From the NCBI GenBank assembly GCA_965603825.1, contig CBFDEM010000013.1, positions 1-64,000 on the forward strand: a stretch of 64,000 bases of DNA, given 5' to 3'. The position numbers and the translations under genes are program-made. This document shows positions 30,360 through 34,791 of this stretch, in pieces (position 1 is the stretch's first letter; each line of letters begins with the position of its first letter). Source of the stretch: Blepharisma stoltei ATCC 30299 (lineage: Eukaryota > Protista > Ciliophora). Below the pieces are notes generated by a model, which made no database searches, had not been told where the DNA came from, and saw nothing but the letters and a program-made list of their open reading frames with translations.

Positions 30360-31739
30360 TTTCTATTATCGGTAGAGAAAATTTAAAATTTGAGCCATTA
30401 AGGTGGTTTCGGATTATGGATTCTGTATGTGGATTAATTAATTTTAGTATATTTTGGGACAAGGACGGCTGGGGGAAGAAAGGAATAAAAAGAAAAGAAT
30501 TAGGTTTGATGCCTTATTTATTCCTAAAATAAAGCAGTAACCACCATATATATTATTTATTTAACTAGCCATAAGTAATGGCAAATAAGTAGAAGTAGCT
30601 CAAGGCAGAGAGACTGGATTTAATAAAAAATTCATAATGTTAAGACAAATCGGCGCTTATTTCTCAGATTTATTCAACACCAAGAATTCATTTTTAAATT
30701 TTTTAATAAGTTCATTTTAAAATATGTGGCCTTTTTCTAGTTTTTATTAAGTACAATTTATAACTTTTTAATTCAGACTTAACTGCTTACTTTAAGCTTG
30801 GGAGTGGACTTGGTTTTACTACAGAATTCAAAAAAAAAACTTTTCTAAAGAAATAAATATGAAAATTTACTCAATAAGCTGATTTGCTCAATACTTTATA
30901 TAAAAAAAGCATATATATGAAGATAATTAGTTGGGTTATTATTGCTTGATAGGAAATCATAAAAATTCAAATAAACCACTCTTATGACACTGGAAATACG
31001 ATTCCTTCAAATACAAATTTTAAGAAGTTCCAACTACTTCCAGTCTGATTTTTGTCTGTGCATGCAATAAAGAATTATTATAAGAATAATTAGCTATTGC
31101 CAAGTTCACATTAATGCAGAAAATTTCCTCACATAAAATTATCAAGGTTGACTTAATAATTTTGTAACTTATCCTATAATTATGGAGTGAATATAAATTT
31201 CGGAATTGGAATTTAAAACTATGAGCATCATCATTGCTCTTATATGCTAATTTTGTTTGATTTAAAATTAGATCTCTGATCCTTAAAATATGTATTGTAT
31301 AAGCTAATCTATATACAAGATATTGGATTTAATAAATAAAATATTTATATGGTACTAATCTATGCTAATAGCTTTATCCTTTTCTTTTCTATTTTAACGC
31401 TGTGAGTTTTTTGATTAAAATTAAAATATAAGTTATTTCGCATATGCCTATTAGAAATTAATAGCATAAGCCATTCTTGATACGCTTACACAAATGTATT
31501 TATGAGCTTTTTAAACCCAAAAATCTATTTTTTTTCTTTATAACTGAATCATAATTATGAATGCATTTAATTGTAAGTTTAATTTGAAATACAAATAAAA
31601 GCATTTAGCAGCTATTTAAATACTCAATTCATAATAGCTCTTATACTTTTCAATGCAAACCTATTTACAAATCAATTGATTTACTAATAATAAATTTTGG
31701 GTTGAGCAGTTCTTCATATTTATATATAAAATATGCAGT

Positions 31740-32260
31740 TCCTCTGTGACAGAGGTATGCATACCTGACATGGTTTTGAGCTGTGCTTATGGCACTACAT
31801 GAGTCAGTAACCTTAATGCGAGAGATGAAGACTGAAGGCTGATATTTTTCGATAACCCCCTTGGGTAGTTAAATTCATTCTTTTTACAAGCAGATTCCAG
31901 TTCAGTGGGTATCCGATATGATGCAAAGTATCATTCTTGCTTAAGAGTTTGTATGGCTTGCTCCAAATAGTGATAGCTGCTGAGTTCTTTTTCCAGATGG
32001 TAGGAAAGAAGGGAAGCAAGCTAGACAGTGAAGCGGGAGTTTATTCAAAAATGGTCCTCTTGTGCTGAATTTTGACGTGGAGGGGATAGAGTTGTTATTA
32101 CTTGGGCGAAGCCATAGTTTGGAAATAGAGACGGTCAACGAATCAGGTAAATTATCTTAAACCTTCACCCAAAAGCTGGAGGTTTCACCAATCTCAGGGC
32201 AGATGCGTTCTCCCATCCCACACAGGAGAGAGCGCAGCTAACTAAGTAGGGACTTAAAAG
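31740..32260 (+). ncRNA. Candidate structured non-coding RNA, family unassigned
   Basis: GC-elevated island between AT-rich spacers with no convincing ORF. At least eight helices can be drawn, most with G-U pairs on the + strand. TATA-like TATATATAAAA at ~31721-31731. Confidence 0.5.
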
Positions 32261-32297
32261 AATTTACTTAAACTAACTAGCTAATTCATAATATAAA

Positions 32298-32570
32298 ATG
32301 GGATATTACAGTGTGCAGTCTTTCTATAGCTTGCTTGATTCTGTACCTAAAGTTACTGGAATTTCAGGAGGTCAGCTATTCAGCCAATTTTCAGAAAAAG
32401 AATATTCAAGAGCTCCATCCGAAGCTTTTATTGGGATGAAAATAGAAACTTTGATACTTAGATATGCAGAAAATCAGCACCAATATCTTTTTGGCTATGA
32501 ATGCTATAAAAAATTAGTTCCACTCATTCAAAAACTATATGAAAAGCAACAACAAGAGAAAATCTCTTAA
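32298..32570 (+). CDS. Small hypothetical protein (90 aa)
   Basis: ATG after an A-rich leader, TAA stop, ordinary amino-acid composition. No family recognised. Confidence 0.6.
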   Translation: MGYYSVQSFYSLLDSVPKVTGISGGQLFSQFSEKEYSRAPSEAFIGMKIETLILRYAENQHQYLFGYECYKKLVPLIQKLYEKQQQEKIS

Positions 32571-32711
32571 AATCCTAATTTTTTAAGTAAATTTCTTTGC
32601 TGACTTAATTCATAATATTTAAATAAAATACATCACGATTAAGAATAAATTAAAAATGCTTTGTGTATAGTATCCACTGCTCTCCATAATTATTTCACTA
32701 AAAAATAATTC

Positions 32712-33323
32712 TTATTTAATCGGCATTTTTTCGGCAGCTTGCTGACTCCATAAATCCATACACGCTTTTTCTGCTTTAGAAGGCTGGAATAAGATATTCA
32801 AAAAGCTATAATAAGATTTCAGCATATTGTCTTTTTCAGATCCATAGCAATATATCATAAAGACAATCATAGCCATAAACAGAAACACCTCTATTTTATT
32901 CACATCAAGTCCATACTGTTTTCCTTGTCTTCTAAGGATTATGTCAAGAAATCGTGCAAAGAAATAAAGTGCCCAAGTTTCCCTACGTCCAGGGTCTTCA
33001 ACTAAAATGGCCAGCCCACTAATTCCGCCAGAGATCACATAATTTAGGCCATCCTCTTTTTGGCGGAAATTTCTCAATAAGCATAAACTTGCCTTAAACA
33101 TAGAGTTCATAAGAGAGGCAAAACCTACGAATCTAAGAGTGTCAATGGATATAAAGCTTAGCAAGGACTTTATTGGGTTTCTGTAGCCCTTTCGTAGGAT
33201 AAAATTAAGGAGAATGTGAAGCGCTGACTTTGCGGCTAAGCTTTGAAGAAAGGCCATGACAAAGCCTCTTAGGGTATTTTCCCAGCATGGGCCTTTGTGC
33301 TTGCACAGCCTCTCTTGTGGCAT
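32712..33323 (-). CDS. TMEM135/PXMP4-like membrane protein
   Basis: CKHKGPCWENTLRGF, FKASLCLLRNFR, ISGGISGLAILVEDPGRRETWALYFFAR resemble TMEM135 repeats. Several hydrophobic helices. Confidence 0.75.
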   Translation of the reverse strand: MPQERLCKHKGPCWENTLRGFVMAFLQSLAAKSALHILLNFILRKGYRNPIKSLLSFISIDTLRFVGFASLMNSMFKASLCLLRNFRQKEDGLNYVISGGISGLAILVEDPGRRETWALYFFARFLDIILRRQGKQYGLDVNKIEVFLFMAMIVFMIYCYGSEKDNMLKSYYSFLNILFQPSKAEKACMDLWSQQAAEKMPIK

Positions 33324-34791
33324 TAATTTTATTATAAATTGGCATTTCTAATATTATATTAAAAATACTTATGGTGATAACTGTTTTAGTTTATTTGCTT
33401 AGAACCAAATGGTGAACCATTTTATTGGGATAAAATCCAAGATGTAATAGTTCGAAAACAATAAATATTTGAAGATTAAGTCCATGCTGTGAATTAAGCA
33501 ATGATTAACTCATAGTTTCTAAGTCAAAACAAAGAAAAGTTGAGAAAAGCTAAAATTTATATATTCAACATCAATTGAGCGAAAATTTACTATAGACTCA
33601 AAACAAGAAAAAATCATTGATTTCTCAATAAGAGACTCAGATAGGTACAAATTATTATGCTTTTTCTCTAACAAAATATATGCTAGTTTATCAAGTCAAT
33701 GTAAAAAATTGATAATTAAGTTAAATTTGCTTAGCTATTCACATAAAGATCATTTCCTCAAGTAATTTTTGCTTACTCAAATATATAAGCTCTTACAGAT
33801 TAATATTATATTCAAAGGGAAGTTGAAATAATAATAGTTGAAGAGAAGCTTTTCCAGAAAATTTAAATATAATAAACTGTATTGATGCTCATGTATAAAT
33901 CGCTAAACGTTTCAAAAGAGTAAGATTCTAAAAACTAATTATACAAAATCTAGAGTTTTGGCTGAAATATGCTAGAATAAATTTATTATTCTGCGATGAT
34001 ATAGCATAAGAAACAGAGAAGAAAGAATCATTATTATTTTTGAATACCCTAAAAAACCATTAAAATATATTGATGATACAATTATATTAATCTTAAATCC
34101 TGATTGATGGAAGATTACTGAGCGTTGGACATTCAATATATAAATTGAATTTGATTCAAAATGCAGAAAAACGAAAGTATTTAAAGTTTAATTTATTTTT
34201 CCAAGAAAACTTGGCTTTTAATGAAAAATGGGGATTTTCTGCACATGAATTAATGGAAAGAACGTTGGAAACTTTAATAATCAGACGCAATTCAGAGTTT
34301 TAGTTGGGAATCAAATGTAAGATGAAAATTTATAAAGAATATTTATTTTTCAAAATTTAATTAGTTTTACGACTTAAATTATACCCTGATTTTCTTAGAC
34401 TTCATTTAAATTCTTTATTACTAGAACATGCTTTTTAATAGGAGACTTTAATCTTTGATAATTCCATTTTCCCTTGTTTTTTATTGGCAAAAAATAACTA
34501 ACTTAAAGAGCTAAAATGGCAATATTCCTATGTTTTCAGCTTATTTTCAAATTTAAATTCCAGGTTTATTATAACCCAAGAGATAAGCTCTTCTTATTTG
34601 ATTAAAATAAAATGAATGACAGATCTAAATTTGCTTATTTTATAAATTAATAAATTTTTAACCTTAACACAGATTTTGGCCAGTTTAAAATTCAAAAGCC
34701 ATAATAAAAACTTGTATAGAATTTCGACATAAACAATTAAACTCAATACGCATATATTTTTAAATTCTCCACATTTTATTAGCCTAACAAT

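Follow-up and report, generated by a model that had tools for sequence, protein, structure and literature searches.

A GC-elevated island in an AT-rich part of the genome of Blepharisma stoltei ATCC 30299 raises the question of what kind of product, if any, such a sequence encodes. A preliminary description of the locus, made from the sequence alone, had proposed that the island is a new structured RNA gene, a proposal that makes two separable claims: that is, that the island is expressed as a non-coding RNA, and that this RNA is structured.

We analysed the first 64,000 nucleotides of one contig ('the window', C13:1-64000, at a telomere-capped left contig end) of a somatic genome of 41,464,486 bases in 64 contigs. 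The published somatic genome of this strain reads UGA as Trp (10.1101/2021.12.14.471607), has introns of 15-16 nt, and has short intergenic regions and tiny UTRs (10.1101/2021.12.14.471607). In the window, the 32 long ORFs are closed by TAA in 27 cases and by TAG in 5, and a long ORF contains on average 1.6 in-frame TGA codons, in confirmation of the TGA=Trp code. The practical lesson is that ORF calling in the B. stoltei genome needs TGA=Trp. The window begins with ~3.8 kb of CCCTAACA telomere repeats (position 1 to about 3840), far above the reported modal telomere length of 209 bp.

Composition and coding tests of the island

The two features that define the island and its upstream flank are as follows.

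31740-32260, + strand: GC-elevated island, GC 0.43, without coding signal and without Rfam match
31653-31868, + strand: 71-aa ATG ORF, visible only with TGA=Trp, judged to be a chance ORF

The description of the island as a GC-elevated block is borne out: GC content is ~0.21-0.24 in the upstream spacer and 0.39-0.43 in the block, and is 0.40 for the transcribed unit that contains the island (T1, below), with a mean of 0.37 for coding sequence and ~0.22 for AT spacers. The upstream sequence, described as AT-rich spacer, is indeed low in GC, but under TGA=Trp it holds the start of the 71-aa ORF, whose score is chance-like. GC islands of at least 300 nt number 40 in the window, and an open frame (with TGA=Trp) covers at least 87% of the island in 39 of the 40; the sole GC island that is not covered by an open frame is the one at this locus, at 31678-32482.

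Neither hexamer nor period-3 statistics give a coding signal on either strand, in agreement with the earlier judgement that the block holds no credible protein. The best hexamer score among the six frames of the island is -1.7, as compared to 1.5±1.9 for dinucleotide-matched random sequence and 14.4±5.3 for true coding windows, and the period-3 signal is 0.65 for the island vs. 1.4-3.2 for genes. Searches of Pfam and of the B. stoltei genome itself with the longest stop-free translated pieces of the island gave no family match and no paralogue. The + strand of the locus holds only two ATG ORFs of at least 35 codons with TGA=Trp, namely the 71-aa ORF and, immediately downstream of the island, an ORF of 90 aa. 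The 90-aa ORF has a hexamer score of 0.178 per codon, which ranks first of 81 small ORFs and lies below all long genes; it has no Pfam match, no relatives in a word search, and no paralogue in its own genome, and its Atlas structure model is poor (pLDDT 0.44).

Frame 0 of the island contains six TAG and zero TAA codons across 166 codons and, since TAG closes long ORFs in the window, TAG is a stop. A hidden gene read as a chain of frames 0, +1, and +2 (joints AAA-TAG and TCT-TAA) was considered and rejected, with coding scores that are negative throughout. The combination of coding-level GC (0.40-0.43 vs. 0.22 in spacers) with no coding trace suggests some constraint on the sequence itself.

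Transcription of the island and its neighbours

Contigs assembled from expression data define one transcribed unit that contains the island and two units downstream of it.

31705-32298, + strand (inferred): T1, unspliced ORF-less transcribed unit containing the island, from RNA-type contigs
32298-32570, + strand: T2, orphan 90-aa ORF, apparently a separate transcript, with its own contigs in four runs
32712-33323, - strand: neighbour of the Tim17/PMP4 family; two paralogues (C34 and C51), homologues in Stentor (59%) and metagenomes

The expression data are four public runs of one study (X1 to X4), each of which contains about half to 0.6 of the words sampled from a 4-kb stretch. The runs, for which the label 'RNA?' was a guess, were used as Logan contigs mapped on 4,001 letters, and such contigs are uninformative on strand, true ends, and level. 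Poly(T) and poly(A) remnants at the ends of neighbouring genes, including T9 at 32693, where the neighbouring minus-strand gene has its 3' end, indicate that the runs are RNA. The island is covered in all four runs by contigs (31705-32298 in X1, 31705-32272 in X3, 31718-32272 in X4, and 31735-32247 in X2) that are 513-599 nt long, align with 0 gaps and 0 mismatches, and have depths of 36-72, similar to those of neighbouring genes; depth is zero in the AT spacers at 31208-31609, upstream of T1, and at 33352-33600. We conclude that the candidate RNA gene is non-coding yet expressed. Being transcribed, longer than 200 nt, and without coding statistics or protein homology, T1 qualifies as a lncRNA in these respects.

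The right ends of the T1 contigs lie just after genomic A runs and are followed by unaligned letters in X1 (5 letters) and X3 (2 letters), with none on the left side; these letters point weakly to + strand poly(A) ends at ~32272-32298. At the other end, the TATA-like run at ~31721, which had been taken for an element preceding the island, lies inside the RNA contigs that start at 31705 in two runs. In the 1-kb AT-rich spacer upstream of T1, low-depth (3-5) RNA contigs at 30868-31170 suggest a weak unannotated transcript.

The contigs of T2 start at 32304, 32305, 32329, and 32360 and end at 32591-32603, with 7 unaligned 3' letters in X1. The contigs of T1 thus stop at 32247, 32272, or 32298 and those of T2 resume at 32304-32360 in all four runs, and other AT-rich transcript ends, e.g. 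32571-32603, do have coverage. Contigs of the PMP4 gene likewise end 21-104 nt short of the PMP4 ATG, and T2 contigs beginning 6 nt downstream of the T2 ATG therefore fit a start belonging to T2 itself. The contig break between T1 and T2 in four of four runs disfavours the suggestion that the island is a structured leader of the 90-aa gene.

Three further features of the contigs concern the neighbouring genes. At 32943-33012, in the PMP4/Tim17 gene, a second contig with six base differences in 70 nt is present in X1-X3 and absent from X4, and probably represents a second allele or strain in the samples; T1 and T2 are without a variant of this kind. At 33271, the PMP4 contig of X1 and X3 departs from the genome 52 nt ahead of the ATG, with a further 29 letters that do not match, which could reflect a chimeric contig or an alternative 5' end. 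At 30751-30779, near the 5' part of a minus-strand C2H2 zinc-finger gene, RNA contigs of two runs skip 27 nt (TA..AC on the + strand), possibly an intron that exceeds the usual 15-16 nt.

Known RNA families, relatives, and folding

An Rfam search of the whole window at the gathering score returned nothing, in agreement with the earlier failure to match the island to U1, U2, U3, SRP, or rRNA, and a search over 31500-32500 at E<=10 returned chance matches only. Elsewhere in the genome, Rfam models identify three reference genes.

C18:415074-415307, - strand: RNase P RNA (RF00009), 83 bits
C31:54778-54979, - strand: RNase MRP RNA (RF00030), 106 bits
C29:114848-115008, - strand: U1 snRNA (RF00003), 87 bits

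A second, sub-threshold U1-like match lies at C18:451628-451788.

The suggestion that the island is a divergent RNase P or MRP RNA is not supported: both genes are present elsewhere with strong scores, and the locus has no match to RF00009 or RF00030 at E<=10. T1 resembles these RNAs in that its island is GC-elevated and ORF-less in an AT-rich genome (GC 0.43 vs. 0.44-0.45) and in that an 8-nt sequence, GGGACUUA, resembles a P4 strand; T1 differs from them in being more than twice as long, in folding no better than mRNA, and in having internal T5 runs. U1 snRNA was rejected as well, with no RF00003 match at the locus and with the U1 gene on C29. The T1 heptamer AUGCAUACCUG at 31757 is faintly like the U1 5' end, and T1 contains a GCACUA loop, but the heptamer lies 50 nt inside the transcript and not at its 5' end. 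Both of the small motifs that had been pointed out, at 31757 and at 32249, are present.

The exclusion of telomerase RNA stands: no stretch of at least 9 nt that is a permutation of CCCTAACA is present on either strand, and a template scan of both strands of 31650-32320 gave neither an exact 9-mer, nor a 10-11-mer when 1 mismatch was allowed, nor a 12-mer when 2 were allowed. A profile search of the whole genome with the ciliate telomerase RNA model (RF00025) gave no match, and the genome authors report telomerase RNA as not found in Blepharisma or Stentor (10.1101/2021.12.14.471607). T1 is like a ciliate telomerase RNA in being an unannotated ncRNA gene of a genome in which telomerase RNA eluded the authors, and unlike one in being without a template and three times longer than ciliate telomerase RNAs. 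Matches to snoRNA families at the locus are chance-level (DdR6, 16 bits, E 9.8; sR43, 11.6 bits), and inspection by eye finds one imperfect C box, AUGAUGC at 31918, without a terminal stem to the CUGA at 31981.

Internal T5 runs would terminate Pol III. T1 contains T5 runs at ~31845, ~31881, and ~31989 and T4 runs at ~31774 and ~32071, and the RNA contigs read through all of them, which argues against a Pol III transcript. A comparison of the regions upstream of RNase P RNA, MRP RNA, and T1 for a shared snRNA-type promoter found no 7-mer in common.

T1 is a single-copy sequence with no paralogue in the genome. Searches with blastn and tblastx beside the PMP4 paralogues on C34 and C51 found nothing like T1 or T2, and the same searches around the PMP4 homologues of Stentor coeruleus, of a Logan contig, and of ENA metagenome scaffolds found no T1-like or T2-like sequence; exact scans of metagenomes with two T1 21-22-mers gave zero matches.

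Nine helices had been found in the island by eye, and all nine are there: seven are fully paired and ungapped, and two have one or two mismatches. The island is not, on the other hand, 'helix-dense': stems of at least 6 bp number 35, as compared to 40.4±6.5 in dinucleotide shuffles, and stems of at least 7 bp number 15, as compared to 13.0±3.4. The minimum free energy (MFE) of the island is no better than that of shuffled controls, with z-scores of -0.40 (+ strand) and +0.04 (- strand), and the z-score of the 594-nt T1 is -1.03. Controls from the same genome gave -2.47 for RNase P RNA, -2.84 for MRP RNA, and -0.75 and -0.34 for two pieces of mRNA. The results show that T1 folds like mRNA and unlike the RNase P and MRP RNAs of its own genome. 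MFE z-scores overlook many genuine functional RNAs.

Local folding was assessed in sliding 150-nt windows (26 tests), and two dips in z were found, each of which coincides with a feature of the sequence.

31741-31766, no strand: two DNA palindromes side by side at the 5' end, CCTCTG-tga-CAGAGG and AGGTATGCATACCT, the latter perfect over 14 nt
32159-32236, + strand: two 9-bp hairpins in the 3' part of the island (32159-32185 and 32204-32236), from pairing

The dip at 31700-31849 is as low on one strand as on the other (z -2.4 on the + strand, -2.8 on the - strand), that is, DNA-palindrome-like, because of the two DNA palindromes. The 12-nt palindrome core, GGTATGCATACC, was considered as a recurrent site and rejected, with only two occurrences genome-wide. 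The dip at 32100-32299 (windows 32100-32249 and 32150-32299) has z -2.1 on the + strand vs. -0.2 to -0.4 on the - strand, and the hairpin region at 32159-32236 is the only strand-specific local fold signal, one that is not significant after 26 tests. Both dips are unremarkable for 26 tests.

Selection on a + strand fold had been deduced from the G-U wobbles in the helices, a deduction that the shuffles overturn by reproducing the excess of G-U stems: stems that contain G-U number 33 on the + strand vs. 19 on the - strand in the island, and 36.4 vs. 23.7 in shuffles. The asymmetry arises because the base composition of the island has more G (130) than C (94). These checks show that helices found by eye and G-U asymmetry are no evidence of structure in a G-rich strand. 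We conclude that, of the two claims made in proposing a new structured RNA gene, the claim of an expressed non-coding RNA stands and the claim of structure does not, folding and helix counts being those of controls.

Readings of the transcribed unit

The best explanation, to which we give even confidence, is that T1 is a lineage-specific Pol II non-coding transcript with its own ends, separate from T2; the strand (+), the polyadenylation, and the independence of T1 from T2 are what we infer. According to this explanation, T1 would be a ~0.6 kb, unspliced, ORF-less RNA, probably made from the + strand and polyadenylated, that would end in the AT-rich tract at 32272-32298, just where the T2 unit begins. 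With the end of T1 abutting the start of T2, transcription of T1 would run across the T2 promoter, whatever it is, and upstream tandem transcription could regulate T2 in cis, either by occlusion or by opening of its promoter. Such an effect in cis on T2 is, speculatively, the most likely function of T1.

In yeast, SRG1-SER3 is a case of an intergenic Pol II lncRNA that runs in tandem into a downstream promoter. T1 resembles SRG1 in being unspliced and ORF-less, in its mRNA-like level and apparent poly(A) ends, and in its position immediately before a small gene of the same orientation, at whose start its 3' end falls. T1 differs from SRG1 in having coding-level GC in a genome that is very rich in AT, a feature that transcription as such would not require. 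A literature search found no ciliate example of an SRG1-type tandem-transcription mechanism. Ordinary intergenic lncRNAs of ciliates are barely described in the literature searched, and the B. stoltei annotation masked classical ncRNAs only.

The evidence that separates T1 from T2 has to be set against two readings in which the locus makes mRNA. T1 and T2 have the same orientation, are directly adjacent, and have similar depths in the four runs (61/74, 43/47, 36/47, and 72/52), and their contigs are separated by a short gap, of which as few as 5 nt are shared by all runs, in a tract of 80% AT where a dip in coverage could split one long mRNA into two contigs; the island would then be a ~0.6-kb 5' leader with many upstream AUGs that controls translation of the 90-aa ORF. 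We regard this as unlikely: the break recurs in four of four runs even though contigs do cover the AT-rich ends of other transcripts, in two T1 contigs the terminal A run is followed by additional unaligned letters, the UTRs described for B. stoltei are tiny (10.1101/2021.12.14.471607), and several upstream ATGs (among them those of a 25-codon ORF from 31734 and of the 71-codon ORF) would block scanning to 32298. That T1 is instead the mRNA of a small protein, from the 71-aa ORF at 31653-31868 or a shorter one, is highly improbable. Its attraction is one of position, in that the 71-codon ATG ORF begins 17 nt after one copy of an 11-mer, AATTCATAATA, and the 90-aa ORF begins 4 nt after another; against this, the hexamer score of the 71-aa ORF is -0.159 per codon (rank 47 of 81 small, chance-size ORFs), its first 52 nt lie outside all RNA contigs, and the rest of T1 would have to be a GC-rich 3' UTR of ~430 nt, next to genes whose 3' UTRs are ~20-30 nt.

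Two other readings accept T1 as non-coding and differ on whether its sequence matters. T1 could be a functionless relic or young orphan locus, DNA of formerly coding or of foreign origin whose transcription persists and which has still to reach AT equilibrium, and several observations agree with this: T1 and the 90-aa ORF are both orphans for which neither relative nor paralogue was found, the fold of the 90-aa ORF is poorly predicted (pLDDT 0.44), and neither structural nor coding constraint is detectable in T1. We consider it improbable, as a recent pseudogene should retain a hexamer signal in some frame, whereas the best of the six frames of the island scores below random; translated pieces of the island have no paralogue or Pfam match; and an old relic should have drifted to the spacer GC of ~0.22. 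T1 could also belong to a new family of structured RNP RNAs that act in trans, its fold being hidden from single-sequence thermodynamics. Its GC of 0.43 equals that of the RNase P and MRP RNAs (0.44-0.45) and exceeds the coding mean of 0.37 with no coding signal, there is a modest fold signal on the + strand only at 32100-32299 (z -2.1), and an Sm-site-like AAUUUUGA is present at ~32068. Set against these are global and half-length z-scores within the mRNA range, helix counts equal to those of shuffles, no Rfam similarity even at E<=10, a single copy without detectable relative, and 3' ends that appear to be of the poly(A) type and a level like that of mRNA, both untypical of snRNA-type RNAs, and we regard this possibility as distinctly improbable. 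The same low standing applies to the wider idea that T1 is a heterotrich-specific, Pol II-made functional RNA under sequence selection, e.g. the scaffold of an RNP: a long shot, but one that, if true, would explain RNase P/MRP-like GC without coding trace and the contrast with 60 kb in which all other GC islands are protein genes. The locus is a clean, expressed, single-copy, ORF-less unit with coding-level GC in a compact genome of tiny UTRs and 15-16-nt introns, and could serve as a test case of whether ORF-less GC islands mark functional RNAs.

The lineage-specific transcript that we prefer and its downstream neighbour are bracketed by exact copies of the 11-mer.

31626-31636, + strand: AATTCATAATA copy 1, ~70 nt upstream of the first T1 contig base
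32283-32293, + strand: AATTCATAATA copy 2, between the T1 3' ends and the ATG of the 90-aa ORF
32607-32617, + strand: AATTCATAATA copy 3, 4 nt after the T2 contig ends

The window of 64 kb has no other exact copy; all three lie on the + strand and bracket T1 and T2. Genome-wide, the 11-mer is 3-fold enriched (287 occurrences vs. 93 for its reversed control). A role as a general promoter or 3'-end element was rejected, because the position with respect to ORFs is not constant among 40 sampled sites, and the flanks of the three local copies, when compared, are not significantly alike. The 11-mer may be a unit-boundary signal (a promoter or 3'-end element) or the trace of small duplications. A 17-nt inverted repeat with 88% complementarity (32256-32272 and 32582-32598) flanks the 90-aa ORF unit, and each of its arms lies just upstream of a copy of the 11-mer.
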